Positions 1 through 43,985 of a stretch of 64,000 bases of DNA are shown here, piece after piece. The position numbers and the translations under genes are program-made. Location of the stretch: NCBI GenBank assembly GCA_001600695.1, contig BCKQ01000013.1, positions 2,045 to 66,044 on the forward strand. The letters are read 5' to 3'. How positions within the stretch are numbered: position 1 is the first letter of the stretch; each line of letters begins with the position of its first letter. The notes below the pieces were generated by a model, which was not told the DNA's origin, did not search any database, and worked only from the letters and a program-made list of their open reading frames with translations. The stretch is from Ascoidea asiatica JCM 7603. Lineage: Eukaryota; Fungi; Ascomycota.

Positions 1-1487
1 TATTTTTTATATAATTTTTATATATTTTATATTTTAATTAACAATTGTTTATAATTTGAATTAGATATCTTCTTAGTAATAATTAGATATTTCGTTCGAA
101 CTACAATCAAGGGCAAGGGTGCAGCTCCGAAGCAACATGTGAAACATCCCCTTCCACAAGGGTTTTCTAGAAGCATACCGCAAAAAGCTGGCTAATATTT
201 CTAGGTCAGATGTCTGAGTCCGGAATCCTGCCGAAGAAGCTCTTAACTTGACTTCTTATATCAATAAAAAGTTAAGTTTCCTATTCTTGATTAGAATTTT
301 TATTTACTTTCATATAAGTGTAAAATCCCTAGTGTTATCCAATATTCGTATTCACTGATTTTTATTCATGGAAGATTGTTTTCTAATAAGTTATAACTTC
401 TGAAAAACTATTTATTTAGAGTCAGTTAACTTCGAAAAATATCCCTCAAAACTTCTCAATACTTGAGAAGTATTCGTCCTTTTTTATTTACACTAAATCA
501 AAACCGGAATAACTATCAAAAGAATATTCTCAACGATATCCTTCGATAATCTTTTCTTGTTTTCTAGTTCTTTCTTTTTCTTTGATTTATAAATTATAAT
601 TACTGATAATTTTTTTACTATTGAATTGAACTCCCATCTATCCATAAAAGCTTGTAATCCCCATTCAATATAATTCACTTCAACTTCAAATTAATTAAAT
701 CGCAGTCACTATCCTTCTGCAAATCCTTGAAAGGCTATAACCTTCTAATATTAATAGAATAGATTCTGATTAATGGTAATGGAAAAACTATTTTATATAC
801 TTAGAAAATTCTGTCTTAGACTTTCATCTTAAACTTTATAAACTTTACTCAAAATTCCCACTTTTTTTTAAAAAAATATTATCAAATAAAAACTTCATTT
901 ATTTTAGATAAATGATCAAATTATAAGTTTACCAATTAATATATTGTTTTTCATTATTTTAGATCTGATCTAAGAAAAATACTTGATTTTTTCTATCAAA
1001 TTGTCTATCTCCCCGCGTTATATTCATCATTTTTGATAAAATAGAGCTAAGTTGATTTATTAATGATTTGTTTATGTTTCTCGTTCAATGCCTAAGCTGT
1101 TCTAATTCTCCTCAAAAGTTGGGATCCGGATTATGTTTTTAAAAGTTCAAAATTAAATTAATTTAACCAATAAGAAAATAATTAGAATTATAAAAGTAAG
1201 TAGAATAGTTTAGAATATTGAAATATTATGGAAATATCAAGGGATGAGATAATTTAGACAAATTTAAGTAAAATATTATACTTAAAGATGAGCAATTTGT
1301 AACAAATAAGTAAATGGAAACTTAAGTTAGTTGAATGAATTGATTAGATTAAAAGATTTTAAAATAAAATTAAAAGTTTCTTGAAATTTATTAAAATTAT
1401 TTATATAATTATATATATATAAGTTTGAAGTAATCCATTAATGAATTAAATCATAACTAAAGCATCATTATTATATTGGATATAAAA

Positions 1488-1577
1488 TTATTTGCAACAA
1501 GATGAAGATTCACAAGATGAGCAATTTTCAGCACATTCACAAGTGGATTTACTACAGCAAGCACATTCTTTAGCCAT
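1488..1577 (-). CDS. Small fungal metallothionein MT-A, 29 aa: MAKECACCSKSTCECAENCSSCESSSCCK
   Basis: Hand translation: aaaaATG context, 9 Cys in CxC/CC/CxxC motifs, no aromatic residues, TAA stop. The paralog at 43204 keeps the Cys positions despite 14/90 nt differences. Below the ORF-track size cutoff. Confidence 0.9.
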   Translation of the reverse strand: MAKECACCSKSTCECAENCSSCESSSCCK

Positions 1578-2490
1578 TTTTAGATAAGGGGGTTTAAGAT
1601 AATTAAATAAGATAATTGATTGATTGATTAATTGATTAATTGATTGATTGATTGATTAATTGATTGATTTAATGAATTTAAATGAGAAAAGACATAAAAA
1701 AGAAGAGAAAATGGTTAAATTTATATCATTTTTCAACTAGAAAAATTGCAAGTTTGTACTAATCAAATCTAATTCTTTTATTATCAATATCCAATTATTG
1801 TATTGTATCATTATGATATTTTTTTATTTACAAAAAAAATCAGGTCAGAGTTAAAAAAGATTTTTTAAAAGATGATTATTAAGTAGTAATTAACTTTATT
1901 TGGCAGGCAATGAGAGAAAAATATTTTAAATTACTTAATTTTATTCAATTTTATTTAATTTTATTCAATTTTATTTAATTTTATTCAATTTTATTTAATT
2001 TTATAAAAATATAAGCGAAATGAACATAATCATTTAACCAATAAGATTCATCTCCTTCAAAGATATTTTTGATAATTGAGAACTTCAAAGGCAAAATTGG
2101 TGACAGACTAGATAAAAGGTTTGTTTTTTGATTACTTCTTTTCAATTCTTTCTATTTCTTTTAATTATTGTAATGACATTGAATGAATATTGATCCATTT
2201 GAAACAATCAGATAAAGAGTTTGTAGAGAGTTTGAAAAGAAGCTGTAAAGATTTTGTAAACAATTATCTGTTCTTGCGGATTGGGATAACCGTTGAAAAG
2301 AGTTCCAAGAGTTTGAACAGTTCAAACTTAGAAGAAGTAAAATAATCAAGGGAAACGAACACTTTCTTTTTAGATTATTTCAGTTGTAATCTAAGAAAAT
2401 TTCAGATATTTAAATGTTTTATAAATAATTTAGATTCAAAAGATAAAGATGGTTTTATTATCTTTATCTTTCTCTTTATTTTTCTTCAAA

Positions 2491-2516
2491 AAAGCAGCAT
2501 TTTCTGCTGTCGCTGC
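2491..2516. promoter_or_regulatory. Cluster of Ace1/Cup2-type copper-response-like GCTG elements upstream of MT-A
   Basis: TTTCTGCTGT at 2501-2510 fits HTHnnGCTGD, with adjacent TGTCGCTG and an opposite-strand GCTG. Conserved in copy B (42303-42330) within a diverged promoter. Confidence 0.55.
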
Positions 2517-2910
2517 GTGAGGACCGGTAATCAGTTCCCCTTCACCAATGTTTGCCCTCGGACATTGCCACGTGCATTACTTTTCTTTAAGTTCTAGTCT
2601 CGCGAGGACCCTTTTTTAACAGGAACAAAAAATAGAATAAGAAGAGCAACCGATTTATATACAATTATCCGCAACAAGATGTCAGTCTTAGCTTATAACA
2701 TAATATATAAATATATACATTTTTATATATGCAACTATCTCTTGAAGATCCATAAGAAAACCATTAAAAAACTCTAATTATAAAAAAAAATATTTATCAA
2801 AACATTCAACAAAAGATCTACTTTAGACAACCTAAAACAATAAAATACATCCAAAAGATAAAAATCAACAAAGTTTAACAAAAATTCATTATTTTATGAT
2901 ATTTTTATGG

Positions 2911-3615
2911 TTATACTACATTAACCGATGAAAGTAAATCATTGACTTTATAAATTAACGTATGATATTCTTTAGCTTTATTATTTGAAACAAAAATATA
3001 ATTATTTTCAAAACCTTTTTTTTAAATTTTCATTTCTCATAATTTTCAAAAAATCATCTTCACATACTATTTTAGTTAAACTTTTCTCTTCTTTATCATT
3101 TTTATTTTCACTTTCATTTTCATTTTTAGTTTCTCTTTTTTGTTCTTGTTCTTGTTCTTGTTCTTGTTCTTGTTTTTTTGAAAATTTAGGTGATCTTGGA
3201 GGTGAAAAAAATCCAATTTTATTCATTGTATTAAAAGAATTATCAAAACTTAGCTTTCTTCTTTTATTATTATTATCATCTGTCAATTTTTCTCTATCTA
3301 ATTTAATTTCACTTTCAATATTACTTTTAGTTCTAGTTGGCGTACAATCTGGGGTCGATATTTCATAATTTTTTCTCTTGATTTCCTTGGCTCTAACTTT
3401 CTTTCTTTCCAACCTTTTTAGGCTTATGCTTGATTTCTTCTTTATGGATTTCAATTGATTGTTCAGATTCAATAAGACTTTTTAATGTTTTAATTCTATC
3501 CATGATATATCACAAATTCCTTTATAAACTTCACAAATTATTTCTCCTTGTTCTTCATTAATTTCTTGATTAATTATACTTTCATATAGTTCAAATTCAA
3601 TAATGCCTTCAAATT
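2911..3615 (-). pseudogene. 5'-truncated duplicate of the JHD2 C-terminal coding region
   Basis: Translates to EEQGEIICEVYKGICDISW and ISTPDCTPTRTKS...KIVCEDDFLKIMRNENLKK, matching the JHD2 tail. It has frame disruptions (stop near 3482; A8 vs A7 run near 3016-3023) and no JmjC or 5' part. This explains track ORF 3008..3472. Confidence 0.9.
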
Positions 3616-3738
3616 TTTATAATATTTTAAAATATAATTATTAGTTTCTAGAGATAAATCATAACAATAAATTTTATTATTAGTATTATTAAGTTACAGT
3701 ATCACTAAAAACAATGGAAAATAGAAATATGTGATTGA

Positions 3739-6360
3739 TCATTTATATTTTATTGATACAATTAAATTATTACCATAGTCATGTTTGAATTTAACACCCT
3801 TCTTACGTTTTCTTCCTCTTCTCCTAGTGACAACAATATCACCATTATCAACTCCATTGTTAAAAAAATTATTATTATTATTATTATTAATATTATTATT
3901 ATTATTGAATTCATTATTAATTGCAGATGAATTTTGTGCGTTGAAATTATTAATAATTAAGCTTTCATCCAGATCACCTAATCCCAGAACATCATCATCG
4001 TCCTCATCTTCATCATCATCTTCTTCATTTTCATCTTCAAGATCTTCTTCCTCATCTTCTTCTTCATCTAATATTTTCAGACTTCTATTACTTCTTCCTC
4101 TTTTATTTCTATGTTTTATGGATGAATCTAATCCATTTGAATTTCCATAATTTTCATTATTATTATTGTTATTAATCATAATTCCATTATTATTATTATT
4201 ATTATTTTCATTATTATCATTTCCATTGTCTCCTTTTACTTTATTTCCAGAGTCATTATTATTATTATCTAATTCATCATTTTCAATTTCTATTCGATCT
4301 TTATTAAATTTTTTTTTATTTTTAATTCGTATCATTTTTATATATGGTTCTTTTTCTTCTTCATAATAATCATAATAATCTTCAATATTATCATTTAATG
4401 AAATACCTCCAGGTAAAATTGAATTAGGTACTGGAGTTCTAAAAGTTCTTGGAATTTCATTTAAATCTGGTAATGTTGGTAATCCTCTTCTATTAAATAC
4501 TCTACCAGCTGTTCTTCTTTTACGTCTACTTTCTCTTTCTCTATCTTTTTCTAATTTTTCTAATTCAAAAAAATCAATATTTTTTAAAACTGGTGTAAAT
4601 TCATTAATTTCTTTAATATTTCTGAAAATATTACCATTAGATGAAGAAACAACTGGTAAAAAATGTCTTTTGATTTCTTCTTCTTTAACCATTTCTCCAT
4701 TAAATTCATAACCAACTAAATATAAAGATTTTGTATATAATTGACATTGTTCTCTAATTGAATGAGCAATAGCTGTTGTAAATTCAGGAGGTAAAGCTAA
4801 TTCTGCAGTTAAAGTTTCTGCAAATTCTTCTGGATTATTTAATTTATTATTTAAATCCCATTCAATTTGATCAATATATTGATTATTTGAAATTGTAATA
4901 TCAAATTTTATTAAAATTCTTAAATCTTTTTCATTATTATCTTTACTTTTTCTACCAGGTATTGAAGTATCATAATTTCCATAATTATTATCGGTTTCAT
5001 AAATTTCTTTTTCTGAATCTATATCTATATCCGAAGGTAATGAAAAGTTTTTATTTTTATTTGAGTTCTTATTTTTGATTTTATTTTGATTTTGAATTGA
5101 ATTATCATTATAAACAAAAGAATGATAATCGTTAATTTGTTCTTTAACATTATTTAAAACAATATCATAAAAATTTTTATTTGTTAATTTATAATCATCT
5201 AATAATAAATTAATAAAATAATCTAATGGAATTAAGTCTTCATTTAAATTCCAAGTAAAGGTATCTCTTAATCTAAATTTATCTTTTTCAACATCAAATT
5301 CTAATCTTATCGGTATTAATTCATCATCATTGGTACTGCTATTATTAAATTTTTGAAATTGTTTAAATTTTGAAATATAATGATCATTAATTTTTGAAAA
5401 ATTTTTAATATGTAAAGAATCAGAATTTGGTAAAATTATTGTTGTTTTTGTATTTGTAAAATTATTACCATAACCTTTATAACCATCACCCCAAATATTT
5501 TTTGAATTAATATTAAAATTATTTAAATTATTTGAATCATTTAAATTTTTTGAATTATTTATACTTAACATTCTTTTTTGTTTTAATTGATTATAATATT
5601 GTAAATTATTTTCTAAATTTTTAAATAATTCAACATTTAATTTTATATTTGGATCATCTTGTAAATTTTGTTTTTTATTTGGATCAAAATATTTAAAAAC
5701 ATTTTTATCACGATGAATAATTTGTTTATAAAATAATAAATCTGAATTTGGTTTTGAAATTTCTAAATAATTTTTTTTATTTAATTTACTTAAACTACTT
5801 ATTTCTTTGAAATTAAAAGAAGTTATATTATTATTTACACTTGAAGTTGAAGATGAAGATGAAGTTTGATTTGGATTTGGAAGGGATAATGGACTTGAAT
5901 TATTACCATTATTATTAATATTGTTATTACTCATTTTATTATTGTTAATATTAGTCTTTTTGCTATTAGTATTTATATTATTGATATTATTGATATTATT
6001 AGCATTAATAGTATTATTGTTAACGTTATTGTTAATTTTATTTAGGTTACTAATATTATTGAAGTTATTTTGATTTTGAATTAAATTTGGATTTAAATTT
6101 TGAGTACGAAGTTGAGAACGTAGTTGAGCTTGAGCCCGTAGTTGAGCTTGGGCTTGGGCTTGGGCTTGAGCTTGAGCTTGTAACTGAGCTTGTTGTAAAT
6201 GTAAGGGAAAACTACCTATTGGTACATTTGGATTAAGATTGACGTTATTTGAGTTAATATTATTTAGATTATTTAGATTTATATTATTGTAAACATTATT
6301 GTTATTATTGTTGTTGTTATTATTGCTAGTATTGTTATTAGGTAACTGATTTCTATTCAT
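3739..6360 (-). CDS. SNF5: SWI/SNF chromatin-remodelling subunit Snf5
   Basis: Two SNF5 repeats (LIPIRLEFDVEKDKFRLRDTFTWN; DQIEWDL...PEEFAETLTAELALPPEFTTAIAHSIREQ), a GYxGYGN motif and an N/Q-rich N-terminus. First ATG is at 6360; the track start is a TTG. Confidence 0.95.
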   Translation of the reverse strand: MNRNQLPNNNTSNNNNNNNNNNVYNNINLNNLNNINSNNVNLNPNVPIGSFPLHLQQAQLQAQAQAQAQAQAQLRAQAQLRSQLRTQNLNPNLIQNQNNFNNISNLNKINNNVNNNTINANNINNINNINTNSKKTNINNNKMSNNNINNNGNNSSPLSLPNPNQTSSSSSTSSVNNNITSFNFKEISSLSKLNKKNYLEISKPNSDLLFYKQIIHRDKNVFKYFDPNKKQNLQDDPNIKLNVELFKNLENNLQYYNQLKQKRMLSINNSKNLNDSNNLNNFNINSKNIWGDGYKGYGNNFTNTKTTIILPNSDSLHIKNFSKINDHYISKFKQFQKFNNSSTNDDELIPIRLEFDVEKDKFRLRDTFTWNLNEDLIPLDYFINLLLDDYKLTNKNFYDIVLNNVKEQINDYHSFVYNDNSIQNQNKIKNKNSNKNKNFSLPSDIDIDSEKEIYETDNNYGNYDTSIPGRKSKDNNEKDLRILIKFDITISNNQYIDQIEWDLNNKLNNPEEFAETLTAELALPPEFTTAIAHSIREQCQLYTKSLYLVGYEFNGEMVKEEEIKRHFLPVVSSSNGNIFRNIKEINEFTPVLKNIDFFELEKLEKDRERESRRKRRTAGRVFNRRGLPTLPDLNEIPRTFRTPVPNSILPGGISLNDNIEDYYDYYEEEKEPYIKMIRIKNKKKFNKDRIEIENDELDNNNNDSGNKVKGDNGNDNNENNNNNNNGIMINNNNNNENYGNSNGLDSSIKHRNKRGRSNRSLKILDEEEDEEEDLEDENEEDDDEDEDDDDVLGLGDLDESLIINNFNAQNSSAINNEFNNNNNINNNNNNNFFNNGVDNGDIVVTRRRGRKRKKGVKFKHDYGNNLIVSIKYK

Positions 6361-6636
6361 TTTAGTTTTATTCAATTAAGATATTATTATAATTATCAGA
6401 TTATTTAATTCTCATAAACTTGGAAAAGTAATTATTTCTTAAAGAATATGAATATGAATATATTATATGAATATGAATATTGATTAATTGATTGATTGAT
6501 TGATTGATTAAAACTACTTCGGTAAAAAAATAAGAATAATTTTGGTGTTGTTTTGAATAAAAGAATTTTACAGGAATTGGTGAAAATACGCCACTGCCGG
6601 GCAGTGTACAGACATACATAACAAGCATAACTCCTG

Positions 6637-6668
6637 GCTGAGTCAGCAAAGGGTGTAATATTACGTCA
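6637..6668. promoter_or_regulatory. bZIP-type sites upstream of SNF5 (GCTGAGTCAGC and TTACGTCA)
   Basis: AP-1/Gcn4 core TGAGTCA at 6639-6645 and a CRE-like TTACGTCA at 6661-6668, in a locally GC-richer patch. Motif match only. Confidence 0.35.
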
Positions 6669-6792
6669 GCAACAATAAAAGTAACTTTGTCTACACAGTA
6701 TATTAATATTTATCTATGAATGTGAATTATACTTTTATATGTTTATATTTTTATGTTTATATTTTTTATTGTTCATTGAATGTATGTTTTGA

Positions 6793-8238
6793 TCATGATC
6801 TATAATCACCATTGATAGTAACATAATCATGAGTTAAATCACAAGTCCAAAACTTAGAAGAAAAACCTTTACCAGTACCTAAATTAACATTAATTGTTAA
6901 ATCTTCAAATTCTAAAATCTCTTTTGCTCTATTTTCATCAACAATTTCAGGTTCACCATTAATTAATAAATTTAAAGGTTTTGAACCATCTTGTGGTATG
7001 AAACTTAAACTTGTTTTATTTGGTATAATATCTTCAACATCAGAATAACCAATTGCACATAAAATTCTACCCCAATTTGCATCTTTACCATATAAAGCAG
7101 TTTTAACTAAATTTGAATTTGCAATTGAAGAAGCAATTTTTTTTGCAGATTCATCATTTGAAGCATCTTCAATATTAATTGTGACAAATTTTGTTGCACC
7201 TTCACCATCTCTAACTATTAAATGTGCTAAAGTTTGAGCAAATTCAGTAAATACATTTAATAAAATTTTATAATTATCTGAATTTATATCATTATCAGTT
7301 ATTATTGGACCACCTGCAGCACCATTTGATAAAGCAATAATTGAATCATTTGTTGACATATCACCATCAACGGAAATACAATTAAAAGATTTATTAGTTG
7401 CATAAGTTAAAATTTTTTTTAAAGTTGAAGAATTTATTGGTAAATCTGTTAAAAATAAAGCTAATAAAGTTGCCATATTTGGACAAATCATACCTGCACC
7501 TTTTGCAATTCCAGTTATTGAATAATCTATATTATTTAATTTAAAAGATTTTGAAATTAATTTTGGAAAAGTATCAGTTGTCATTATACCTTCAGCACAA
7601 TTTAACCAATTTTTATGATCTGAACCAAGATATTTATTTTTATTATTAAAAAATTCATCAATACCATTATAAATATTTTGCATTGGTAAATGTTGACCAA
7701 TTACACCAGTTGACATAACTAAAGTTGATAAATCATTTGGTTTTATATCATTTGGATTAATATTTTTATCAATTTTAGATGTAGATGTAGATACATTATT
7801 GACATTTTGATCAATATAATTTGAAGTTAATTTTGAATTATTATAACCTTTTAAACCAGTTACTGAATTTGCACAAGCACTATTAATTAAAATTGAATAA
7901 ATATTTTCACCATTTTTAAAATTTAAAATTTCTTTATCTAAAATTACAGGAGCCGCTTTAAATTTATTTGTTGTAAAACAACCTGCTGAATTACATGGTA
8001 AGTCAGATATTATTAAAGATAAATCATTTTTTAAATTATTTTTTTTTAAACCACAATTTAATGAACCAACTTTAAAAGATTTTGGATAATTTCCATTATT
8101 TGGAATATATTTTAGTTTATTTTTTGGATATGAATTTAAAATTAATGAATTTTTTATTGAAAATGATCTTGATTGGGATAGTAAATTAAAACTTTTCATG
8201 AATGTAGTTTTTTTGAAATTTGAAGAAATTGAAATCAT
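6793..8238 (-). CDS. ARG7: Mitochondrial ornithine acetyltransferase (ArgJ family)
   Basis: FTTNKFKAAPV, IMTTDTFPK, KGAGMICPNMATLL (autocleavage Thr), DGDMSTND, RDGEGATKF and WTCDLTHDYVTINGDYRS, plus a basic Ser-rich presequence. ATG at 8238; the track start is a TTG. Confidence 0.97.
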   Translation of the reverse strand: MISISSNFKKTTFMKSFNLLSQSRSFSIKNSLILNSYPKNKLKYIPNNGNYPKSFKVGSLNCGLKKNNLKNDLSLIISDLPCNSAGCFTTNKFKAAPVILDKEILNFKNGENIYSILINSACANSVTGLKGYNNSKLTSNYIDQNVNNVSTSTSKIDKNINPNDIKPNDLSTLVMSTGVIGQHLPMQNIYNGIDEFFNNKNKYLGSDHKNWLNCAEGIMTTDTFPKLISKSFKLNNIDYSITGIAKGAGMICPNMATLLALFLTDLPINSSTLKKILTYATNKSFNCISVDGDMSTNDSIIALSNGAAGGPIITDNDINSDNYKILLNVFTEFAQTLAHLIVRDGEGATKFVTINIEDASNDESAKKIASSIANSNLVKTALYGKDANWGRILCAIGYSDVEDIIPNKTSLSFIPQDGSKPLNLLINGEPEIVDENRAKEILEFEDLTINVNLGTGKGFSSKFWTCDLTHDYVTINGDYRS

Positions 8239-9506
8239 TTTGAATATTATTATCCTGTTCTTATTTGAAAAAGTAAATAAAAAAATTAAGAATAAAGTCA
8301 ATTATTAAATTAAACCAATTAGTTTTTTTTTGGCTTAGGTTTATTTCACTTTATCAGATTCAAAATTCAAAAATGAGTAATATTAATTGTTAATTTGTAT
8401 ACAAATCTCGATAAAGTTATTATTATCGATCAATGCTGTTTTTTTGGTGTGAAAAATATGAAAAATTTCGGAATTTCCTAATTTTGACACCGGTCAGATA
8501 TAAAATTATACTCACGTGTTTATTGTATCAAGTGCAAGTTACAGCGAATAAACTTTGAGCCGGAACTGGAATTAAAAGTTACCAACTCCTTGGAACCATG
8601 GATTTGATATTTCCGAATACGAGTTAAACAACGAAGAACGACAGAAATAGCGAAGAACGACAAGAGTGGGTTATTACTTCAACACATGGCGTGAAGCTAA
8701 ACGAGCACAGCATAAACACAAGCACAACAACAACACCAACCACAAGATATGCTCAAATCATAACAGTGGGTCATGTGATCAGTGAAGGAAGGGTAGTTGG
8801 TACTTCCTTTCTCTTTTTCCTTTCCCACAGCTGAAACAGGCTCAAGTTCTGCAAGTTCCAGAAACAGCAAAACCACCAAAAGCACCAGAAGCAGCACACT
8901 TGCCACTTGCCACTGGCTGAGAGAGTGAGTTGTGCGTGCAAAGCGAAAGTCTGTTTGGATCTTCTTTCTTTCTTCTTTCTTTCTTCTTCTTCTTCTTCTT
9001 CTTCTTTTTCTTCTGAATCCTAAACCTTTCACTGTCAAATTATTGCTGATTCCAAATTGTTATTCTCCTAACCTGCCAGAAAATACTAATAATATTCTAT
9101 TAAATCTCTATTATAAAAAATAAAATAATCAATCAAAATAGATAAAATAAAGATCAAATAAGAATCAGAAGTAAAATTAAAACTAGATTTAAAATGAAAT
9201 AATCGTAAATATAAAAAGTATTAATATCAACTATCAAATATCTAACATATTCATTATTTATTCAATATACACTAACTTATTTATCATTAGTCTGATATTC
9301 AGTACAAAATTATACTCCTAATCTATTAATTTATTAATCTTTAATACTTTTTTATTTTTTTTCTTTTAAAAGTTACTTAATATTACAAACAAGTAATATA
9401 TAATCAATCTATTCAAAATATTTCCTTAATATATTTATATAATATCTAATAATCACAACCATATTCTTTTTTTCAATTTTTAATCATAATATATTCAATA
9501 TTATTA

Positions 9507-15860: not shown

Positions 15861-15910
15861 TAATATAATATAATATAATATAATATAATATAATATAATA
15901 TAATATAATA
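15861..15910. repeat. (TAATA)10 microsatellite
   Basis: Read directly from the sequence. Confidence 0.95.
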
Positions 15911-27013: not shown

Positions 27014-29126
27014 TTTTTTGCTTTTTTAAAAAATACATATAAATAATATAAATCAAAATATTAAAATACTTTAGAAAATATATCTTGATATTATATTAAA
27101 TAGTATTTCTTCTTTTGATTTATTTATTAACAATTTGATTTAATATGAATTCAATTAGCAAACCTAATAAGAATTTATAAAAAAAAAGCTCTCAAATTTA
27201 TTAATTAGTTTTTTAAAGATGTTATGGATAAATGAGCAGCTTTAAAATAACCTAGGCTTACGTTACAATAGTAAACAAAGGACACTGACCACAGAAGCTG
27301 AGATTGAGTTAAAGGAATATTTAAAATTAAGACTAAGATAAATCAATCAATTGAATAATTGTAAACAAAAATATATGTTTATTTCCTTTAATTTGATTGA
27401 TATGAATATTTAGTTGATTATTAATTTGTATTTAAGTAATAAAGCAAGTAAGAAAGAAAGAAGGTAAGAAAATTCAGTTTTTCTTGGTTTACTACTCTTC
27501 TTGACTTCTGGTATTGAATTAACTTTGTAATGGATCAATTCCGAGCGGGAAGAATTTACTGGACTGTACTAATTACTACTGGGGCTGGAGTCCCAATAGA
27601 TTTATCTGTAAAGTAATGGAGAACCAAATTTGCAATGTAATTATTATCTCAAAAACCCCAGTGAAAAAGGGCAAACATTCATGAAATAAAGACAAATCTT
27701 TTCAACTTTGAATAAATTTACAAATTGTTTCCAGTTTACTTAAAAAGAAGAATTACTACAATTTTATATGGATTTAAAATTCAAAAACAATAAATCTCAA
27801 GAATAAAAACATGGAAATGGTAGATAATAAAGATGCAAATAACAAGTAACTTTGGGCCCTTTTTCTGATATCCTGTAGAAAGAATTGCCTTCATCAAAAA
27901 TTTTGTTATTCAATTCTACACTACAATTTAACAAAGACTAGAACAAATACTGTGATTGAAATATCCTTTTATATTTTCATTAAATTTTTTTATCCAATGG
28001 GTTTCTCTTTCTCCTTCTATTTCCTGTTGCTCTCAGATCTCTCAGTTCCAATCTCTTTTCCTTCACCTGGTTAACAATCAACTTTTACCGCACTCTTTAT
28101 TTCAGAATTACTCCGAAGTAACCATACCGACAGCGCATGTAACAGTATGAAAACAAGGTGAATCCGATCCTCAGTCACTTTCATTGACCCATGATTGTGG
28201 TCTCACATATTATCTATCCATAAACATGGTAGTACCAATATAAAGGTACTACCAGTGAAGAGGTAGCTGTAACAAAATGTATAAATATGCCTTTTTACAC
28301 GAGCTAGTATCACACTACATCTAGTAACGTCCAACTGCCTTCTTTCTTCTTCTCCAAAACCCCTGGGTTTGAATTACGTAATGTCACCTGCTTTTAGCTT
28401 TCAAATAAACCACGGTACTGTAACTTTGCTAACCTTCCCGAAACCACTATTGTTAAATCTTTAAATTGAGTATCCGCTACTATTTGGATAATATGCTGTA
28501 ACGTTAATAATCAGGAAAAACAAAATTATAAATTTTGAAAAAAAATATAGAAAAAATCAGAACAATCAAAATAATCAAAACATTCAAAACACCAGGTTAT
28601 TGTTCCTTCTTTTGAAAATAGAAGCTCGAATAAATTCATTTATCAACAAAGATTGAATTGTTCAATTTTGATACATTGAAATAACAATTAAATATCTTAA
28701 AGAACTTAGGCTATATTATACTTTGAGTATTCAATATTTTACTCCATTTGCAAATCAATAAATCAATCCTTTAATAAATCGATCTATCTATCTATCTATT
28801 TATCTATCAAACTATCAAACTATCAAATTATCAATCAATCAAGCTATTAATTAATCAATCAATCAACTAACTACAAACCTCTCTATTATATCAATTCTTG
28901 ACTGGTTCAGATTCTTACCTAATTCACTCCATTCTATCCCAATATAATTTACAATATTTATTTTTATATGCATCTTTTTATGAATTAACTGAATACTTTA
29001 AAATTTTTTTTCCTTAAATCATATAATATCCATAAAATATTCATAAAATAATCATAAAATAATCATAAAATAATCATAAAATAAAAATAAAATAAAAATA
29101 AAAAAAATAATAATTATTATTACTAA

Positions 29127-35100: not shown

Positions 35101-35846
35101 CAGAAAATCAAAGAGCAAATAATATGAATCAAGAGGTTGCCGAGGATGTTCAAAACAATATTTTGAATTATAGTGAATCTAAAAGTCTTGAAAAGGATTC
35201 AGGTAATAGCAATAGTTATGAATATCCAAAAAATAATACATCAAAGCAAGAAGCAATAGAAGTAAATAAGTCTATAAATGATAGTAATCCAAAAGATAGT
35301 CTTGAAATAAGCGATGAAATTGCATATAATTCAAAACCAAGTGGAATTAGTCAAAGCGATAAAAATAATGAAAGTGTTGAAAAAAGTGGAAATGCTGAAA
35401 ATTTTGATAATTTCGATAATTATGACAACTATGACAATTTCGATAATTATGATAATTGCGATAATTATGATACTAATATGAGCTATGCTGCTGAACTCGT
35501 TTCTACTGATATTAATTCCAACGATTACTACTCTAAAAATGATTATCTTAGAGATAATTATTCTAAGGATGGTGAATACTCTAAATGGGATGACAATAAC
35601 TTCACAGTTGATGGAACTAAAAAATCATACTGGAATAATGATTATGATAAGAAAAGATCTAGAAATAGCTCTAAGGGAAGGTACAATGATAGGAATCAAA
35701 GCGGCTCTAGAAATAGTTCTAGAGGTAGAAATAGCTCTAGTGGTGGAAATAGAGGATCTTTTAAAGGAAATCCAAGAGATAATACAAAAGGAGGCTTTAG
35801 ACGAAATGCAAAAAATAATTTTGGTGGAAATTTCAAAAATAGTTAA
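29127..35846 (+). CDS. Unknown 2239-aa, mostly low-complexity, probably nuclear protein (possible TFIIS-N/IBD-like helical domain, N[YF]D repeats, RGG tail)
   Basis: 6.7-kb open frame with aaATG context, basic NLS-like runs and acidic tracts. The only ordered-looking stretch is ~30700-30990. No confident family assignment. Confidence 0.85.
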   Translation: MSNINSNNRGISDTTTRKRKKTNSKINANKNLNSVSKRKPISRKNSILKSNSKLNNNSDLDSDLSDALSTFSTDDEDQLIQNNNVNEEEEEAEEEEYDENDNDYQNTQNSSKKRKLDNNNNDNNKLNNKQWISNKKDSVRRRNLRELKNLNNILSTKSKQSISNLSKLSDLSDLSDLSDLSDLSDLSDTNNNNNNNIDKSNKKSNKKINKKNNDDDGDDDYVDDENINNNNNNDDDYDDDDDDDDEIMITRVKKIDKSKQKNLINKPINPSINTPINKKSIKKKPIKSKEKPKLNDVKKIKLNISKTANSNSKKNLISNKINNEKLKIIKSLPVSSVPIRSKRTTTTLRQLKLKDNLRKIKNINNPNSSQSEIIDISSSESETDDNETYNYSNHYNHNHNHNNNIVNSSTTNISRNIIRRKPSPIPVSGKKDKKYSYTDNKISKDLDPNLNPDLKNPKSNNSNDDDDDDIDSDTASLFGPDSEESSKKSQSNNSDDNDNQSENDDYKFVFPSPDNPRTIALKQFSNEEIKQELSKLEIDIRTLLNKIPYTDIIFLEFLKILTNLLLFPKESINPSLLMGLKIRKTLKQFFISKSIIESHLYKVYHFDEIKDHLDNLYFFSGKINDFKKLMLTKKRNSFGISKDSLRKLNKKALENNGKDNKEVDQIEEKNSNDAKANETEVPSKDSKDINDVQNEKDSKDLKDITVKDSKDSDISKEIQSDSHRLSIGSISPLDKSKPFSEKTAKPLTPFFKKTPFFSDLNESQSTPNSSVLSIFTRGASKSSSFPSANSLTDSALKNIPNFLRSSKLIDRQIKKKSDALSKEKSKIEKPDEIKELINPKFHKPPPSGPKLYSEDQSYDNFENYGDFVDLTDNFDKGMDFAMDNSNYDASYAESTAYNSNPNENNNEANKDQEYVDFYAENDYNMEPSSYNDPVQSSYNGDYSYDKAPSYNKGFKDNNKSKDRNTYNARSSSFDKKKGYDSRQNNSNRYSRDSYSKRSNSKSSNFSETFSHSRKNTRDFSNRGFDSEKPSYDYSKGNNSNFKKDKFNKKSYNNSSYLEVNRSFDTSFQKNNKSDTYKANSSRVTEKNGGQDKNLDQNHSTYNNGYDYSEKYENNEENKRYDEYDNFDNYDNYDNFDNYDNYDNINDNQNDKQHDEQNEGQNGKVADKMDIKSGVEEKTKNNYQDKSNSIYVDQEKNLIDNNKLGTRLQENKTVSKAQTENSDVLIAETKNIEKSNVYDNFDNFDNYDNYDNCDNNDTYLEENKKSTVIKKDDKVLNNKVDKPKDLKCDSSQQQHATSYNNKKEEKYTENHNSNENFDQYDSQNNNDNPKNHDNFDSYDNYDNFDNYDNFDDYDNTYEKTSNSKPLSGVGSTTSEISNKKLEPVIETEKKFPVKNKAQISKSQEAERFKNGTNGNSKSSYGYNNNHESYDNIKIDNKKKKEVHSKNIPVQAVKKLDFNNEKQKQLPPTLSLGKSDHKEKYIEQIPSNPSKNIEKPKVTKPLPTLSKKEAPRKSVGEMENELSKIDAIFLETFDANSDETPPSETEPILKDVINHSSEKDSLETAFAREIEEVEEKSSNEKINSESTFKLRAKGSVINTIEPVPNGNEEKNSYDAYDSFDNYNTLDNGNDVDSKLEYNTYNNYEITDFVEGENNYHNKSNNKSGGSIEKNANDFDYYTNSNISKQLDYKEIGKKNSLGSINDVINIDYENQSSPKKEIPKHPISLNQSQNSKKNAAPLKKYDSGLLSRGSSRTFTSNSQNTVSPKDSKGITSEEILAIDNKEPTESYINYDNYDNYDECENYGNHDDYDKAQNYNSYDYYENEKSQEKLDNFDKIETQKNEKFMSKEPLPIVSKKLTANDARQSYFPKGPKSSIELSNADNQINENNDNFSQNHADDDKSNNETVEKITIKTPRIQESKSNSVGSSNQGAKKSKLTGKFPSGPKSIAESLVNDSKNKNSSNDYQNLRENNITEIRIDNLDEKPKNKDKVKTTESENQRANNMNQEVAEDVQNNILNYSESKSLEKDSGNSNSYEYPKNNTSKQEAIEVNKSINDSNPKDSLEISDEIAYNSKPSGISQSDKNNESVEKSGNAENFDNFDNYDNYDNFDNYDNCDNYDTNMSYAAELVSTDINSNDYYSKNDYLRDNYSKDGEYSKWDDNNFTVDGTKKSYWNNDYDKKRSRNSSKGRYNDRNQSGSRNSSRGRNSSSGGNRGSFKGNPRDNTKGGFRRNAKNNFGGNFKNS

Positions 35847-36453
35847 GGAGATAATGAAAAGAGTGGTAAATCTAGTGAAGGTTCCAGAGGTTCCAGAGAC
35901 TCTAGAGGATTCAAGGATTCCAGAAGTTCAAGAGGTTCTAGAGGTGGCTCTAGAGGAGGTTTTCAAGGAAGCTCTAGGGGAGGTTCTGGTAGAAATCAAA
36001 GATGGTGATACTTTTTGATTAAATGTAAAACATTTTTTTTTATTTTGTTTTTCATTTATTATTTTATTTTTATTTTTATTTTTATTTAAAATTTTATTCT
36101 AAGATTGTTTAATTAGTCAGCTCATTTTTCCATTTATTTATAATCATTTTTGTTTAATTTTTATTCATTTTCTTGAAATTCTAATTTCAAAATTTTATTT
36201 ATTGTGCATTAGGATAATGATTTTTTTTTTTTCTTCTTATTTTATGTTAGTTTGAATGCTTATAATATTAATTTGCTTAATCTTTATTCAACTTAGGGGT
36301 TTGATTTTACTTTTACTTTCTTTTCAATTTTCATCTATATCTATTTCTATTTCTATTTCTATTTTTTCACCTATATATTTATTTATATATATTCATATAT
36401 ATATATATTTATATGCAGAATATTCATATGTATAATTTTAGCTATAATAATAA

Positions 36454-37548
36454 TTAGAATAAATTTGTATTATTATATTCATCTGGAGTTACAAGAATTA
36501 ATTGATTAAAGTTTAAAAATCTGCTAAATAATAACCAACCCCATCTAAACCAAACCATTTGAGAATTATGAGCAAATGACATTGCAGCTAAACTTAAAAT
36601 TACTGAAGGAAAATCTGAGAATATATTTATAATTTTTTTATCTACTTCATTTATTATTGAATTATTATTATTATTGAAGAAATTCTTATAATAAATTTTA
36701 ACTAAATGTAAATTCGTTAAAAAACCAAAAGAATATTTTTGAAAGAAATTTAAAGAATTTAATTTGTAAAAGAACATATTTGGATTTGAGTTTGGGATAT
36801 TTTTTTGATTATAATTTCTTAAAAAATAATTAATTCCATTATAAAGGGAAATATGATTTTTATGATTTGATATACCATTTTGATCAAAAGAAATAAGAAC
36901 AATATTTTCATATTTATTATTATTATCATTGAGGATAATATTATTTAAATAATTTGAAATTTTAGTTGAATTCCAATATAAACTCATTGAATCTCTAAAA
37001 ATTGAATCATTTTGAATTAAATTTAAATTTTTTTTATTTAAACCCAAAATTGAAATACTTTTTTCTAATTCCATGGATCTAATATTACCAATACCATCAT
37101 TGTTACCATTTGAAAAACAGATTATATTAAAATTATCATTATAATTATCAATGTTGTTATCATTATTAATGAATTTTTTTAAATTGACTATAGTTGGAGA
37201 AAAAAACATAACTTCATCATCAGGATGAGCAATGATCAAATAAAACTTTGAATTTTTTAAAAATTTTGGAAATTTATTATAATTTACTACATTCTCAATT
37301 GATTTATTAGTGAAATTATTGAAACTATTAAAATTTAAGTTTATATTCAAACTTTTTAAAAAAGTATTATTTTCTTGAAATTTTGAAATTACAATAAAAT
37401 TATTTGAGTTACTTAAATTATTTATCGAATTATTGAATGAATCATTGAATGTAATTAAAATATTTGGTAAAAAAGTTGTTAGAAATATCCAGAATAAATT
37501 TACAACTATAAAAAATTTTATAATCTTATGACATAAATAAGAACCCAT
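36454..37548 (-). CDS. GPI12: N-acetylglucosaminyl-PI de-N-acetylase (PIG-L family)
   Basis: N-terminal TM segment, IAHPDDEVMFFSPT, SFDxxGISNHKNH and AHNSQMVWFRWGW. Confidence 0.95.
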   Translation of the reverse strand: MGSYLCHKIIKFFIVVNLFWIFLTTFLPNILITFNDSFNNSINNLSNSNNFIVISKFQENNTFLKSLNINLNFNSFNNFTNKSIENVVNYNKFPKFLKNSKFYLIIAHPDDEVMFFSPTIVNLKKFINNDNNIDNYNDNFNIICFSNGNNDGIGNIRSMELEKSISILGLNKKNLNLIQNDSIFRDSMSLYWNSTKISNYLNNIILNDNNNKYENIVLISFDQNGISNHKNHISLYNGINYFLRNYNQKNIPNSNPNMFFYKLNSLNFFQKYSFGFLTNLHLVKIYYKNFFNNNNNSIINEVDKKIINIFSDFPSVILSLAAMSFAHNSQMVWFRWGWLLFSRFLNFNQLILVTPDEYNNTNLF

Positions 37549-38837
37549 TTTTATAGATTGAAAAAAAAGTGAATTGATTGAATATTAGTAATGATTAATA
37601 TATCATTCTCTAAAAGATGGAAATTGAATATATAATAATATAATGAGATGGTACACTGAATATATAATATTTTAAATCTTCCTTTATCTTTTTTTAAGTC
37701 TCTATTCTTTTTTTTTTATTTTAGTACGAGTTACTGATAAACAGATAAATCAGAAACTAAATGAGATAATTAATCATCACAGAGATGCTGGAAATTCAAA
37801 ATTTAGGTTTCACTTCATTCTCTGTCAAAAAGGACAAACACGTGTTGATACCCCGGAATTGAAGTAAGGTTTGTGCCACAAACAAAACGAACGTGATAAG
37901 ACGCGGGTTAAAAAAAAATTCAGCAGCCCACCTGACTAAGACCCCGTGCAATTTCAAAAGTGGGCTCATTTGTCCTAATACAGATTTGTGTTGCGTCCCA
38001 ATTGAAGAGGTAACAAATACTGTACAGCGCCGTGTGGTTCTGTGTGTACAGTAAAGCTTTAAAAAAACATGCAGAAAGGTAATGTGTTAACGAACACTGC
38101 TCACTTACGAGACCAGCACCACCTTGGAATCGGGAAATCAAATAAGTCAAGCCAGTCCAAAAATGTGTTCGCCAAGGGTGGGCTAACGAACTCACGCTCC
38201 CACTGCCGCTGCGCTTTGGCGAGTTGTGCGAACTGTGCGGATGTTGCTGCTGGCACTGGGGACGCTTTGAAAGAAAAAGCACCACAAAGGCCGTTGTGGA
38301 TCCTTTTTTATCAGCTTCATAGCTTCGGTTGCAATAAGAATCATTTCTAATTCTAAATTTGAATCATTTCTTTCTCTATTGTTCTTTTATTCTTCTTTTA
38401 AATACTTATTAGTTTTTTTATTTCTATTTCAAATCAAAATCATAACTTTTGTTTAAAATAAACGTATTAATCTTTTTTTTCTCCTCAAAAGGTTTTTTTT
38501 ATATCGGAGTTGGTATCTAATTTTATAAAATCCCTATTGAAACTTTATTGCTACAACTTCAATTATTTTATTTAATATCTCTAAATTTGCATAAACTTCT
38601 TCTTTAAATTGAAAAATTTAAAAACCTGATCAAAGAACTTAGAAAATAGACAATTATAATTCTTTTTTTTCTATTAAAATATATTAAATATTGATTTATT
38701 ACTGACTTTTATAAATATTTTTTTCAATAGGAAAAGAGAAAATTTCAATTTTAACATTTGAAAAATTTATCAAAAAATCATCTTTCAACTGAAAATAACT
38801 AGTTCGCTGTTTAATTCATCTTTCAAAGTTATCTAAA

Positions 38838-41800
38838 ATGCCATTTTTAGAATCTGATACTCATCAGAATTCTATTAAAATGGAAAATGGTATCAATAAT
38901 AATGAAAATGGCAGTACTACTAAAACTAGTAATAACAATACTAATGGTAGCAATAATAAAAAATCCGATAATGAATATAAACTAACTGAAGTACCAACTG
39001 TTCATCCAACTCATGAAGAATTCGCAGATCCAATTGCTTACTTATCTTCCGAGAAAATCTTAAATTTAGGTAAAAAATATGGAATGTTAAAATTAAAACC
39101 ACAACCTATTAAATATAAAAAAAATAATAATAATAAAAATTTAATCAATTGGAATCCAGTAGTATCTATTGATTTAACACTTTTTAAGTTTAAACCAAGA
39201 ATTCAAGTTTTAAATGAATTAAATTTATTAACTAGAATTAGAAATGTATTTCAAAAAAGTTTATCAAATTTTACTTTAATGAAAAAAAAAAAACCACCAA
39301 AATCTTCATTTTTTTATACTGAAAATAAAAAAAGAATTTACTATTATGATCTATTTCTTGAAATTAATAATTATATTATAAAAGATTATAAAAATTTAAT
39401 TAATTTAACAAAAATTGGTAATCATCCAACAATTTTTAATTTAATTAAAGATTCAGATAAACTTTGGTTAGATTTAAATAAATTTTTTAATTTAAATTTA
39501 GAAAATAGTAAATTAAAGTTAATTTATATTAGTTTAATTAAAGATTATTGTATTTTTTTATTCAAAAAAGATGCATCTAATTTACTTCTTTTAAATAATG
39601 ATAATCATATCGATTATAATATTAATATGGATGATAATAATATGGATAGTAATAATGTTGATGATACTGTTAGTACATTAAATACAATTAATCAAATGAA
39701 GCTGATAAAGACATTATTCAAAAGTAATACTTTAACTAATGAAGATTCTGATTCTGACTCAAATTCAGAATCAGATTTTGATTCTAAATCTAAATTTGCT
39801 CATCGAAATGGCCATCAAAATAATAGAAAAACTGATGATGAAAGTGAGCATGAAAGTGATAACGAAAGTGAAGAAATTGAAGAAGAATGGTGTCAAATAT
39901 GTGGTTCTATGGATGAAGAAGCTTCAATGTTACTTTGTGATGGATGTGATAAAGGTTTTCATATATCTTGTCTTGATCCTCCAGTAGTTAAAATTCCAAA
40001 AGGTAAATGGTTTTGTGAAAATTGTTTAATTGGAACTTGTGATTATGGATTTTCAATGTCAAATAAAAAATATTCATTAATGGAATTTAATAATAAGAAT
40101 TATTATTTTATGAAAAGCTATTTCAATGATAGAAATTTATTAAAAAAATTAAGGATCAGAAAAAGTGATAAAAAATTTGATTTAAACGTTGATATTTATA
40201 ATGAAAATTATATAAATTTATTAGAAAAAGAATTTTGGAATAATTTAGTTAATAATGAAGATTCAAAAATCAAAGTTTATTATGGAGCAGATATTCATAA
40301 TAAGAAATTAAGTGAGAAATCATGTTTTCCAACAAATTTTACATTAAAATATTTGAAATGTTCAGATCACGAATATTATGTAAAACATTCATTTAATTTA
40401 AACAATTTACCATTTTCAAAAGGATCATTATTGAAATATTTTAAAAATATAAGTGGAATGACAACACCATGGATTTATGTTGGATCATTATTTTCAACAT
40501 TTTGTTGGCATTTAGAAGATCATTATACATATTCAGCAAATTATTCACATGGTGGAGCAATTAAAAAATGGTATTCAATACCAGAAAATAATTGTTTAAA
40601 ATTTGAAAAATTTTTAAATAAAATGGCACCACATTTATTTTTACAACAACCAGATTTATTACATCAATTAGTTACATTAATATCACCATTTGAACTAAAA
40701 AAAAATAAAATTGAATGTTATTATGCAAATCAAAAACCTGGAGAATATATAATTACATTTCCAAAAGTTTATCATTCTGGATTTAATTTAGGATTTAATA
40801 TTAATGAAGCAGTTAATTTTACGACAAATTATTGGTTTAAATTTGGTATAAATTCATTAAAAGATTATAAAATTATTCAAAAAACTCCAATTATCAATCA
40901 TTTATATCTTTCAAAATCCATAATTTTAAGTTTTTTAAATGGAGAATATTTTGAAAATGATAAAGAGAAAGGTAATTTAGTTTCATCAATTTCATTAAAT
41001 TCAATTTTAAATCCAATATTTAATATGAATAAATCTAATTATGAATTAATTAAAAATTGTTTAAATTTTATTGAAAGTAGATTAATTCAAAATAAAGAAA
41101 AGAGTAATATAATTTTAAAAGAATTTAAAGATTTTTTTAAACTTGACCTATACCCTTCTAAAATCAATGAAGGAATTGATGAAGAAATCAATGAAAAAAT
41201 TAATGAAGAAATTAATGAAGAACATGGAGAAATAATTTGTGAAGTTTGTAAAGGAATTTGCGATTTATCATGGATAAAACTAAAATTATTAAAAAATTTC
41301 ATTAAATCTGAAGAATTAATTAAAATTCATAAAGAAGAAATTAAACATAAACTTAAAAAGAAAGTGGAAACGAAAGAAGTAAAGAAGATTAAGAAAATAA
41401 ATAATCAAATATCGACCCCAGATTGTACACCAACTAGAACTAAAAGTAAGAATGAAATTGAAATTGAATTAGATAAAGAAAAATTGATAGATGATAATAA
41501 TAATAAAAGAAGAAAATTAAGTTTTGATAATTCTTTTAATACAATGAATAAAATTGGATTTTCTTCACCTCCAAGATCACCTAAATTTTCAAAAAAACAA
41601 GAACAAGAACAAGAACAAGAACAAAAAAGAGAAACTAAAAATGAAAATGAAAGTGAAAATAAAAATGATAAAGAAGAGAAAAGTTTAACTAAAATAGTAT
41701 GTGAAGATGATTTTTTGAAAATTATGAGAAATGAAAATTTAAAAAAAGGTTTTGAAAATAATTATATTTTTGTTTCAAATAATAAAGCTAAAGAATATCA

Positions 41801-41852
41801 TACGTTAATTTATAAAGTCAATGATTTACTTTCATCGGTTAATGTAATATAA
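38838..41852 (+). CDS. JHD2: JARID1/KDM5-type H3K4 demethylase
   Basis: JmjN (PTHEEFADPIAYL), ARID-like region, PHD (CQICG...LLCDGCDKGFHISCLDPP...WFCENC) and JmjC with intact Fe ligands (WHLEDH...YHSG), which argues for Jhd2 rather than Ecm5. Confidence 0.92.
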   Translation: MPFLESDTHQNSIKMENGINNNENGSTTKTSNNNTNGSNNKKSDNEYKLTEVPTVHPTHEEFADPIAYLSSEKILNLGKKYGMLKLKPQPIKYKKNNNNKNLINWNPVVSIDLTLFKFKPRIQVLNELNLLTRIRNVFQKSLSNFTLMKKKKPPKSSFFYTENKKRIYYYDLFLEINNYIIKDYKNLINLTKIGNHPTIFNLIKDSDKLWLDLNKFFNLNLENSKLKLIYISLIKDYCIFLFKKDASNLLLLNNDNHIDYNINMDDNNMDSNNVDDTVSTLNTINQMKLIKTLFKSNTLTNEDSDSDSNSESDFDSKSKFAHRNGHQNNRKTDDESEHESDNESEEIEEEWCQICGSMDEEASMLLCDGCDKGFHISCLDPPVVKIPKGKWFCENCLIGTCDYGFSMSNKKYSLMEFNNKNYYFMKSYFNDRNLLKKLRIRKSDKKFDLNVDIYNENYINLLEKEFWNNLVNNEDSKIKVYYGADIHNKKLSEKSCFPTNFTLKYLKCSDHEYYVKHSFNLNNLPFSKGSLLKYFKNISGMTTPWIYVGSLFSTFCWHLEDHYTYSANYSHGGAIKKWYSIPENNCLKFEKFLNKMAPHLFLQQPDLLHQLVTLISPFELKKNKIECYYANQKPGEYIITFPKVYHSGFNLGFNINEAVNFTTNYWFKFGINSLKDYKIIQKTPIINHLYLSKSIILSFLNGEYFENDKEKGNLVSSISLNSILNPIFNMNKSNYELIKNCLNFIESRLIQNKEKSNIILKEFKDFFKLDLYPSKINEGIDEEINEKINEEINEEHGEIICEVCKGICDLSWIKLKLLKNFIKSEELIKIHKEEIKHKLKKKVETKEVKKIKKINNQISTPDCTPTRTKSKNEIEIELDKEKLIDDNNNKRRKLSFDNSFNTMNKIGFSSPPRSPKFSKKQEQEQEQEQKRETKNENESENKNDKEEKSLTKIVCEDDFLKIMRNENLKKGFENNYIFVSNNKAKEYHTLIYKVNDLLSSVNVI

Positions 41853-42302
41853 CCATAAAAATATCATAAAATAATGAATTTTTGTTAAACTTTGTTGATT
41901 TTTATCTTTTGGATGTATTTTATTGTTTTAGGTTGTCTAAAGTAGATCTTTTGTTGAATACTTTGATAGATATTTTTTTTTGTAATTAGAGTTCTTTAAT
42001 GATTTTCTTTTTTTCAATGTGTTTTTTTTTTGATTTATTTTCTTTTTTGGGTTTCAAGAGAGAGTTTTATAAATATACAGTATATATATTATGTTATAAT
42101 TTGAGACTGGCATATTGCTAGTGACAACCTCTCCTGTATAATAAATGCATAGTTATTCTTATTTAAATATAGATTTTTCTAGTTCTAATTTGTGCCTGCT
42201 AAAAAAGGGTCCTCGCGAGACTCGAACTAAAAAAAAGAAGTACTCCACGTGGAAACCTCCGAGGGCAAACATTGCCTAATGGGAACTGACTACCGGTCCC
42301 CA

Positions 42303-42330
42303 CACAGCGACAGCAGAAAGTGCTGCTTTT
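42303..42330. promoter_or_regulatory. Ace1-type GCTG element cluster upstream of MT-B
   Basis: ACAGCAGAAA at 42310-42319 is the reverse complement of TTTCTGCTGT. CAGCGACA and TGCTGC are also retained. Nearby CACGTG (42246) and CTCGCGAG are conserved between the copies. Confidence 0.55.
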
Positions 42331-43203
42331 GTAGATAAGCACAAAGATAAAGACAAAGTTAAAGAAAGATAAATGTATATTTATTTTATTATTCTTTAAA
42401 TCTGAATTGTAAATATATTCAATTTCTTCAGATTATAACTGAGTTCTTATAAAAAAAGGTGTTCGTTACCCTTGATTATCTCACTTCTTCTCCAGGTTTG
42501 AACTCTTTAAACTATTCAAACTCTTTTCTACGGTTATCCCAATCCGCAAGAAAAGATAATTTGGGTTTACAACTTCTTTGCAACTCACTATCAGATTGTT
42601 TCAAATAAATTAATATTCATTTATTGTCATTACAATTATGAAAAGAATCAAAAAGAATTGAAAAGAATTAATCAAAAAACAAACATTTTATCAAACCTGT
42701 CATTAATTTTACCTTTGAAGTTTTCAATTATTAAAAATATCCTCGAAGGCGATGAATCTTATTGGTTAAATGATTATTTTCATTTCGCTTATATTCATAA
42801 AATTAAGTAAAATTAAGTATATTTCCAAAATATTCTTCTGTCATTACCTGCCAAATAAAGTCCATTATTACTTTGAAACCATCATTAATAGTATTTTTTT
42901 TAACTCTGACCTGATTATTTTGTTAATGAAATAATTACTAGTTGTAAAATAATAGATAATAGCACAGTATCATATTGATAATACGATAATGAGATCTCAT
43001 CAATAACTATCCATTTTTTAAGATATAAAAAATTATATAAATTCAACCATTTTATCTTCTTTTTTTATTACTTTTCTTATTTACTTTTAATCAATTCATA
43101 AATCAACTAATTAAATTATATTAATAAGTTTATAAACCAATTAATAAATTAACAAATTAACCAATTAACCAACTAATCAATTATTTCAAACTTCTTATTA
43201 AAA

Positions 43204-43293
43204 ATGCCTGAAGAATGTGCTTGTGGTAGTAAAACTACTTGTGAATGTGGTGAAAAATGTACTTCCTGTGAATCTGGATCTTGTTGCAAATAA
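43204..43293 (+). CDS. Small fungal metallothionein MT-B, 29 aa: MPEECACGSKTTCECGEKCTSCESGSCCK
   Basis: Hand translation: aaaATG, 8 Cys, TAA stop. 21/29 aa identical to MT-A, with all 8 Cys shared. Confidence 0.9.
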   Translation: MPEECACGSKTTCECGEKCTSCESGSCCK

Positions 43294-43307
43294 TTTCATA
43301 TCCAATC

Positions 43308-43347
43308 TAATATAATATAATATAATATAATATAATATAATATAATA
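43308..43347. repeat. (TAATA)8 microsatellite in the MT-B 3' flank, not expanded in copy A
   Basis: Read directly from the sequence. Confidence 0.9.
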
Positions 43348-43985
43348 ATGATGCTTTAGTTATGATTTACTTCATTAATGAATTACTTAACCTTATATAT
43401 ATATCCAATTATATAAATATATTTTAATAAATCTTAGAAATCTTAAAAATCTATTATAAAACTTTTTTGATCTAATCAATTCATTCAATTCTTTCAATTT
43501 ACTTAACTTTCCATTTACTTATTTGTTAAAATTTGCTCATTTTTTATTTAAATATTCTACTTAAACTTCCTTAGCTCATCTCATCCCTTGATATTTCCAT
43601 AACATTTCAATATTCTAAACTATTCTAGTTACTTTGATAATTCTAATTATTTTCCTATTGGTTGAATTAAAATTAATTTTAAATAATTATTAAATTAGAG
43701 TCATTTAATCCTTATTTTATTCATATATGATATACTTTTCATATATTATATAAAAGAAATAAAATTTTAACTCTGTTGAAAATAGAAAAAAATTTACCAA
43801 TTATTTAAATATAATCAATTTTTTTATTATATTTCATGGTTCAAATTAATATAAATAAAAATGATTATTCCTACTTTTCATTAATTAATTTCTTTTATTT
43901 TATTATTATTCATTATAATTTATTATAATTCAATTCAAATCAAATACTCTCAATTCAAATTATATCAGTAAAACTTATTTTCAAA

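Follow-up and report, generated by a model that had tools for sequence, protein, structure and literature searches.

Two inverted copies of a sequence that holds the end of the histone-demethylase gene JHD2 and a small putative metallothionein (MT) gene lie on either side of a 37.5-kb block of genes in the ascomycete Ascoidea asiatica JCM 7603, within a 64,000-nucleotide stretch of DNA (assembly GCA_001600695.1, contig BCKQ01000013.1, positions 2,045 to 66,044 of the forward strand; hereafter the window, to which unlabelled coordinates refer). The question that this locus raises is whether the block can flip, in the manner of the flip/flop (FF) segments that switch MAT genes in other yeasts, as an earlier reading of the DNA letters (the sequence-only reading) had proposed, or whether it lies between the arms of a static duplication, which that reading had kept as a fallback. 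The locus was compared with the rest of the A. asiatica assembly (71 contigs, 20.3 Mb; C-numbers are contig or scaffold labels, and C13 carries the window) and with A. rubescens as the only outgroup, a single and distant congener in which the SNF5 region was reached via ARG7. A literature search found no paper on these particular repeats in Ascoidea. The fallback, refined by a recent conversion tract, is the better-supported reading: the locus is probably an old inverted segmental duplication, mostly decayed, that carries one recent tract of ectopic conversion and has no switch function.

Unequal arms with one near-identical core

Self-comparison of the window gave a single long inverted match, 1146-3611 against 43683-41168, with 37,556 bp between the arms, in agreement with the ~2.5-kb inverted repeats around ~37.5 kb that had been described. 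The proposed arm anatomy also holds: read in the sense of JHD2, each arm consists of a 3' part of JHD2, a spacer of ~1.2 kb, a 29-codon Cys-rich open reading frame (ORF) and a 3' flank of ~350 bp. Copy A (1146..3611, minus strand), which self-alignment and synteny mark as the derived arm, lies between SNF5 and WDR48 and holds a decayed JHD2 3' part, the spacer with the MT promoter, the gene MT-A and its 3' flank, whilst copy B (41168..43683, plus strand) is continuous with an intact JHD2 and stands in a gene order (giant ORF-GPI12-JHD2) common to A. rubescens. Genome-wide, the arms have no further copies except the duplicate scaffold end on C18 discussed below.

By blastn the arms are 77.96% identical over 2632 columns with 53 gap openings (E=0); counted over aligned columns they are 88% identical, with about 75 indels and a longest perfect run of 123 bp. 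The divergence is uneven (chi-square p=2e-14; the best 500-column window was matched by 0 of 5000 permutations), with mismatch fractions of 0.106 in the 3' flank, 0.156 in the MT ORF, 0.160 in the spacer and 0.127 in the inner JHD2 part, against 0.019 in the core as bounded at 2754-3281. Indel events number 45 in the 1.18-kb spacer and nine in the inner JHD2 part (330 bp). Thus a divergence of 11-16%, accompanied by many indels, prevails over 82% of the arm, and homogenisation is confined to 18% of it.

The homogenised core is ~450 bp long and shows ~99-99.5% identity in a background of ~87%, with sharp edges and flanks that are 84-89% identical (binomial P about 2e-24 at a background divergence of 0.13). 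In copy B it spans 41518..41959 (plus strand), the last ~110 codons of JHD2 and ~105 bp of its 3' untranslated region (UTR), and in copy A 2804..3252 (minus strand), where it differs by two substitutions, one additional T in a T run at 3016, which shifts the frame, and six additional nucleotides in a hexamer repeat at 3140-3145. We infer that the core is a recent ectopic gene-conversion tract, copied from the working end of JHD2. The donor would be the intact gene in copy B because a C-terminal motif common to A. rubescens JHD2 stands in frame there, and a decayed donor would have broken that frame. Selection was rejected as the cause of the core, because the frame of copy A is broken and the identity extends to silent and UTR sites. 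The recombination-competent part of the repeat is the JHD2 C-terminus and 3' UTR only, and the repeat is not anchored on metallothionein cassettes as had been suggested.

Origin and decay of copy A

In A. rubescens, ARG7, SNF5 and WDR48 are immediate neighbours with a common orientation. The same order and orientation are found in A. asiatica, where the sequence runs WDR48, a Ty3/gypsy-like element, copy A, SNF5 (the WDR48 side being supplied by C18). Since SNF5 stands directly beside WDR48 in A. rubescens, copy A is a lineage-specific insertion close behind the stop of SNF5, with the left border as assembled being the ancestral one. At the orthologous A. rubescens borders there is neither an MT ORF nor a repeat at either one. 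Gene order in the sister species thus keeps the SNF5-WDR48 and giant ORF-GPI12-JHD2 arrangements and does not show the block as an ancestral unit: about 130 kb separates ARG7 from JHD2 there, with reshuffled neighbours, and the genes upstream of ARG7 in A. rubescens are at C13:232-242 kb in A. asiatica, so that an ancient unit was rejected. The shared ARG7-SNF5-WDR48 synteny likewise rejects a single uncorrected staggered-break inversion.

The intact JHD2 (38838..41852, plus strand) encodes 1004 amino acids with JmjN, PHD and JmjC domains by Pfam. In A. rubescens the JHD2 gene call (556 aa, partial; 10001-12955 of its stretch) stops at a CTG codon region, and the frame runs about 400 codons beyond the call to the conserved C-terminal motif. 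In copy A, the unconverted JHD2 segment at 3253..3611 (minus strand) has 15, 16 and 15 differences over the three codon positions, has lost a conserved Cys and contains frameshifts; judged by these letters, copy A holds a JHD2 pseudogene that has decayed neutrally. A second JHD2 relic of ~80 bp follows at 3611..3691 (minus strand), corresponding to 39317-39397 and ending ~50 bp past the SNF5 stop. About 1 nt of microhomology marks the junction of the two pieces, at which ~1.77 kb including PHD and JmjC is skipped. Because of this further relic, the duplicate would once have covered at least 4.4 kb or have arisen with a template jump. Since the 1.77-kb gap has no GT-AG ends, its origin through retrocopying or splicing was rejected. 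The stop of SNF5 itself (3739..6375, minus strand; Pfam) and the inner edge of copy A are ~50 bp apart, and the sequence at 3600-3741 indicates that SNF5 may have lost its own terminator and now end in copied JHD2 sequence.

The end of C18 and the start of C13 overlap by 5212 bp, up to window position 3168, with mismatches only at Ns in C13, and across 1-3168 the two scaffolds that hold copy A are identical base for base. On this overlap C18 and C13 can be joined, and the SNF5-WDR48 synteny backs the join; C18 terminates at 3168, within the homogenised core, and was not merged with C13 despite the overlap. Between WDR48 and copy A lies the Ty3/gypsy-like element (C18:303624-310022), whose long terminal repeats (LTRs) are about 490 bp and differ by 7.6%; its 3' LTR ends at window position 110 (1..110, plus strand) and its 4-bp target-site duplication, AGGG, is intact. 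No tRNA gene was found beside it. About 25 dispersed copies of this element, 92-100% identical across the 900 bp compared, occur in the genome, a near-identical one 40 kb away (C18:266873), and these are better substrates for ectopic exchange than the inverted repeat. Misassembly of copy A as a whole, a possibility raised by the sequence-only reading, is unlikely given the pseudogene decay, the target-site duplication at the adjacent element and the SNF5-WDR48 synteny.

The metallothionein ORFs

MT-A (1488..1577, minus strand) is an intact ORF of 29 amino acids with nine Cys, and MT-B (43204..43293, plus strand) has 29 amino acids with eight Cys; both point outward, as had been noted. MT-C (43986..44069, plus strand; 27 aa) lies outside the repeat and is an older tandem paralogue of MT-B. 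MT-A and MT-B differ at eight amino acids, with the start, the stop and all eight shared Cys kept and no indel, against 45 indel events in the spacer, which suggests selection on both copies. None of the MT ORFs matched Pfam at E 0.1 or any PDB sequence, 29 aa being a very short query. In their letters they have the traits of short fungal copper thioneins, being Cys-rich, below 35 aa, free of aromatic residues and furnished with CxC and CC motifs. They resemble that class, of which the 26-aa Neurospora crassa metallothionein is a member (PMC4755600), in length (27-29 aa) and in a Cys content of about 30%, and differ from it in having no Pfam or PDB match; their metal binding is putative. The locus thus holds three putative, unannotated minimal metallothioneins. 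Both spacers keep a relatively GC-rich block (2470..2625 in copy A), which lies outside the core, and each MT promoter contains one match to an Ace1-like consensus, a candidate site by consensus match only, ~0.9 kb upstream of the MT.

Does the block invert?

The arrangement probably formed in four steps. At least 4.4 kb of the JHD2 3' part and the MT-B region would have been copied in inverted orientation behind the SNF5 stop and before WDR48, as the synteny indicates; the JHD2 part then died, as the 1.77-kb gap, neutral substitutions, frameshifts and ~13-16% divergence show; the metallothionein would have stayed under selection as an extra copy; and a break in copy A would recently have been mended with the intact JHD2 end, 38 kb distant, as the template, which overwrote the ~450 bp of the tract. 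Most likely this conversion took place without crossover, copy A having since gained two substitutions and two slippage indels. Ectopic conversions are mostly non-crossover events (10-15% crossovers, PMC6511840; about 4%, PMC9731477), and 2% divergence already lowers repair ~5-fold (PMC6511840). The block is probably static on laboratory time scales. Three considerations weigh against a static duplication: a single assembly does not reveal whether a crossover accompanied the conversion, or how many flips there have been; a staggered-break inversion that was later reversed once would yield the same final arrangement; and the unmerged C18 end inside the core fits a repeat-induced break but fits mixed orientations as well.

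The nearest working analogue is the FF region of Saccharomyces chromosome XIV, which re-inverts over evolutionary time by conversion between its arms, yet showed no flip over some 53,800 mitoses and 950 meioses (PMC9731477). At both loci, kb-scale inverted repeats of duplicated genes enclose a non-MAT block of tens of kb, and in both, conversion between the arms is ectopic and recombinase-free, the tract here being ~450 bp at 99.5% in a background of ~87%. Whole-arm homogenisation and conservation are not shared. The Saccharomyces arms are about 4 kb and 97.6% identical throughout, are present in all eight species and are known in both orientations, whereas the arms here are 2.5 kb, 88% identical, interrupted by ~75 indels, homogenised over 450 bp, species-specific and partly pseudogene, and are known in one orientation from one assembly. 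Scars of staggered-break inversion in Drosophila (PMC1885836) offer a further parallel, being inverted duplications of unique sequence, including a gene fragment, at the ends of a block; the block here is not inverted relative to the outgroup at its left border, so a second, reversing event would be needed.

An unregulated substrate for recurrent inversion like the Saccharomyces FF region, in which conversion between the arms occasionally ends in a crossover, with an orientation that differs between strains or homologues or with an even number of past flips, is in our view unlikely, although it has the most in its favour among the alternatives weighed here: the core is proof that the arms exchanged strands recently, the assembly break falls inside it, the genome repeatedly shows inverted pairs of near-equal genes at distances of 2.6-27 kb, and the mechanism has precedent (PMC9731477, PMC1885836). 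Yet no more than 18% of the arm is homogenised, perfect identity extends over 123 bp at most, A. rubescens lacks the repeat whereas the Saccharomyces repeat is conserved across its genus, and the left border is ancestral. The frameshift at 3016, moreover, should have been purged if copy A had often served JHD2: a crossover inward of 3016 would by computation give a JHD2 whose last 34 residues are replaced by two, and over about half of the core a crossover would leave the protein truncated. The same property bears on a regulated flip/flop switch, induced by copper or stress and swapping the cassettes behind JHD2 and SNF5, which we regard as the most improbable of the alternatives. Its appeal lies in a geometry and block size resembling those of FF1 systems (12-61 kb; PMC6692504), one of which, a MAT system, is present in the sister species A. 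rubescens. FF1 MAT switching in Ogataea polymorpha and A. rubescens (PMC5720833, PMC6692504) indeed shares with this locus a single inverted repeat of 2-2.5 kb with a truncated gene copy; the Ogataea repeat, however, is two identical 2-kb copies (PMC5720833), and here the arms are far from identical, MAT genes are absent, the end genes being SNF5 and JHD2, there is no expression state to switch, neither centromere nor telomere is evident beside an arm, and the species is a heterothallic diploid (PMC6692504). A flip would also change no gene-promoter pairing, as the MT promoters, with their conserved module, fall outside the core and would travel with the MT genes, and SNF5 and JHD2 would likewise retain their own promoters; a switch is unlikely because nothing would be re-paired and about half of the core crossovers would cost JHD2 its end. 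The flip/flop analogy drawn by the sequence-only reading therefore fails on its defining features, with MAT elsewhere, arms ~12% diverged with many indels, and no silencing domain visible.

Somewhat less remote than a switch, but still improbable, is an assembly artefact in which reads of copy B were polished into copy A and so produced the near-identical core. This is a short-read assembly of a diploid with a scaffold end within the core, and inverted repeat copies tend to be merged in such assemblies (PMC9731477). The two cores, however, differ at four places, both copy-A scaffolds agree over 1-3168, an assembler would have no reason to merge sequences diverged by 13%, and three sequencing runs from two studies, all of which may be of the source strain, contain 98-99% of the words of 3200-9000. 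An old inverted duplication with one conversion tract and no switch function thus remains the reading that we favour.

Enclosed genes and neighbours

The enclosed block (3612..41167) holds SNF5, ARG7, a PHD protein, KRE6, UBR1, an ORF of 2239 aa (the giant ORF), GPI12 and the body of JHD2. Pfam supports SNF5, ARG7 (ArgJ), KRE6, UBR1, GPI12 (PIG-L) and JHD2 (JmjN-PHD-JmjC), all named so beforehand; the name SET3 given to the PHD protein was not confirmed, the gene having PHD matches only. ARAGORN and Rfam gave no tRNA or RNA family match in the block. As the sequence-only reading had observed, no MAT gene is visible among these genes, nor a MAT-like ORF in the gaps between them. MATalpha1, with its HMG box, was found only on C50, an 11.8-kb contig, between AGE1 and STE20, an order that matches the published A. 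asiatica arrangement (PMC6692504), and hidden MAT genes in the block were therefore rejected.

The 2239-aa ORF (29127-35846) is of low complexity and without a Pfam match, and an Atlas search with its residues 480-950 gave none; its positional orthologue in A. rubescens has 1813 aa and matches at 37% over about 100 residues only. KRE6 (18695-20387) has an inverted paralogue at C18:179147-180832, about 147 kb leftward, with 77% identity over the coding part. Directly to the right of copy B are NUDC and MT-C, and to the left of copy A WDR48 lies 1.5 kb beyond the dispersed Ty3-like copy; ordinary genes continue on both sides, with no gene-free silencing domain visible beside either arm.

Inverted gene pairs elsewhere in the genome

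Other gene pairs in inverted orientation, with equal or near-equal profile scores and confirmed by coordinates only, recur in the assembly. They comprise an ALDH pair with equal scores, 5.7 kb apart (C21:39439-40824, plus, and 46486-47871, minus), an ARP6-like pair 26.5 kb apart (C16:272637-273881, minus, and 300405-301649, plus), a DFM1 pair 11.3 kb apart (C20:168240-168767, plus, and 180024-180551, minus) and an AA9 pair 2.6 kb apart (C19:210138-210779, minus, and 213360-213995, plus). A third ARP6-like copy on the small contig C46 may be the other haplotype.

What the locus records by itself, a duplication that decayed and underwent ectopic conversion, is clear but ordinary, and its value lies in its context. 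As the locus as a whole cannot be an assembly artefact, local inverted duplications truly form and persist in this lineage, and we judge the genome-wide pattern of inverted pairs to be of more interest than the locus. A tentative and rather doubtful extension is that A. asiatica carries ten or more non-MAT blocks between local inverted duplications of varied ages, which flip by ectopic recombination, and that the block described here is an ageing member of this set, still exchanging sequence, with an orientation that varies among homologues or strains; a genome of this kind would supply raw material for the flip/flop MAT switch of A. rubescens. In budding yeasts, the flip/flop mode of MAT switching has originated ten times or more, and every origin required an inverted repeat (PMC6692504). 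Should such repeats arise often in A. asiatica, a single genome could show how flip/flop substrates originate, become homogenised and decay.

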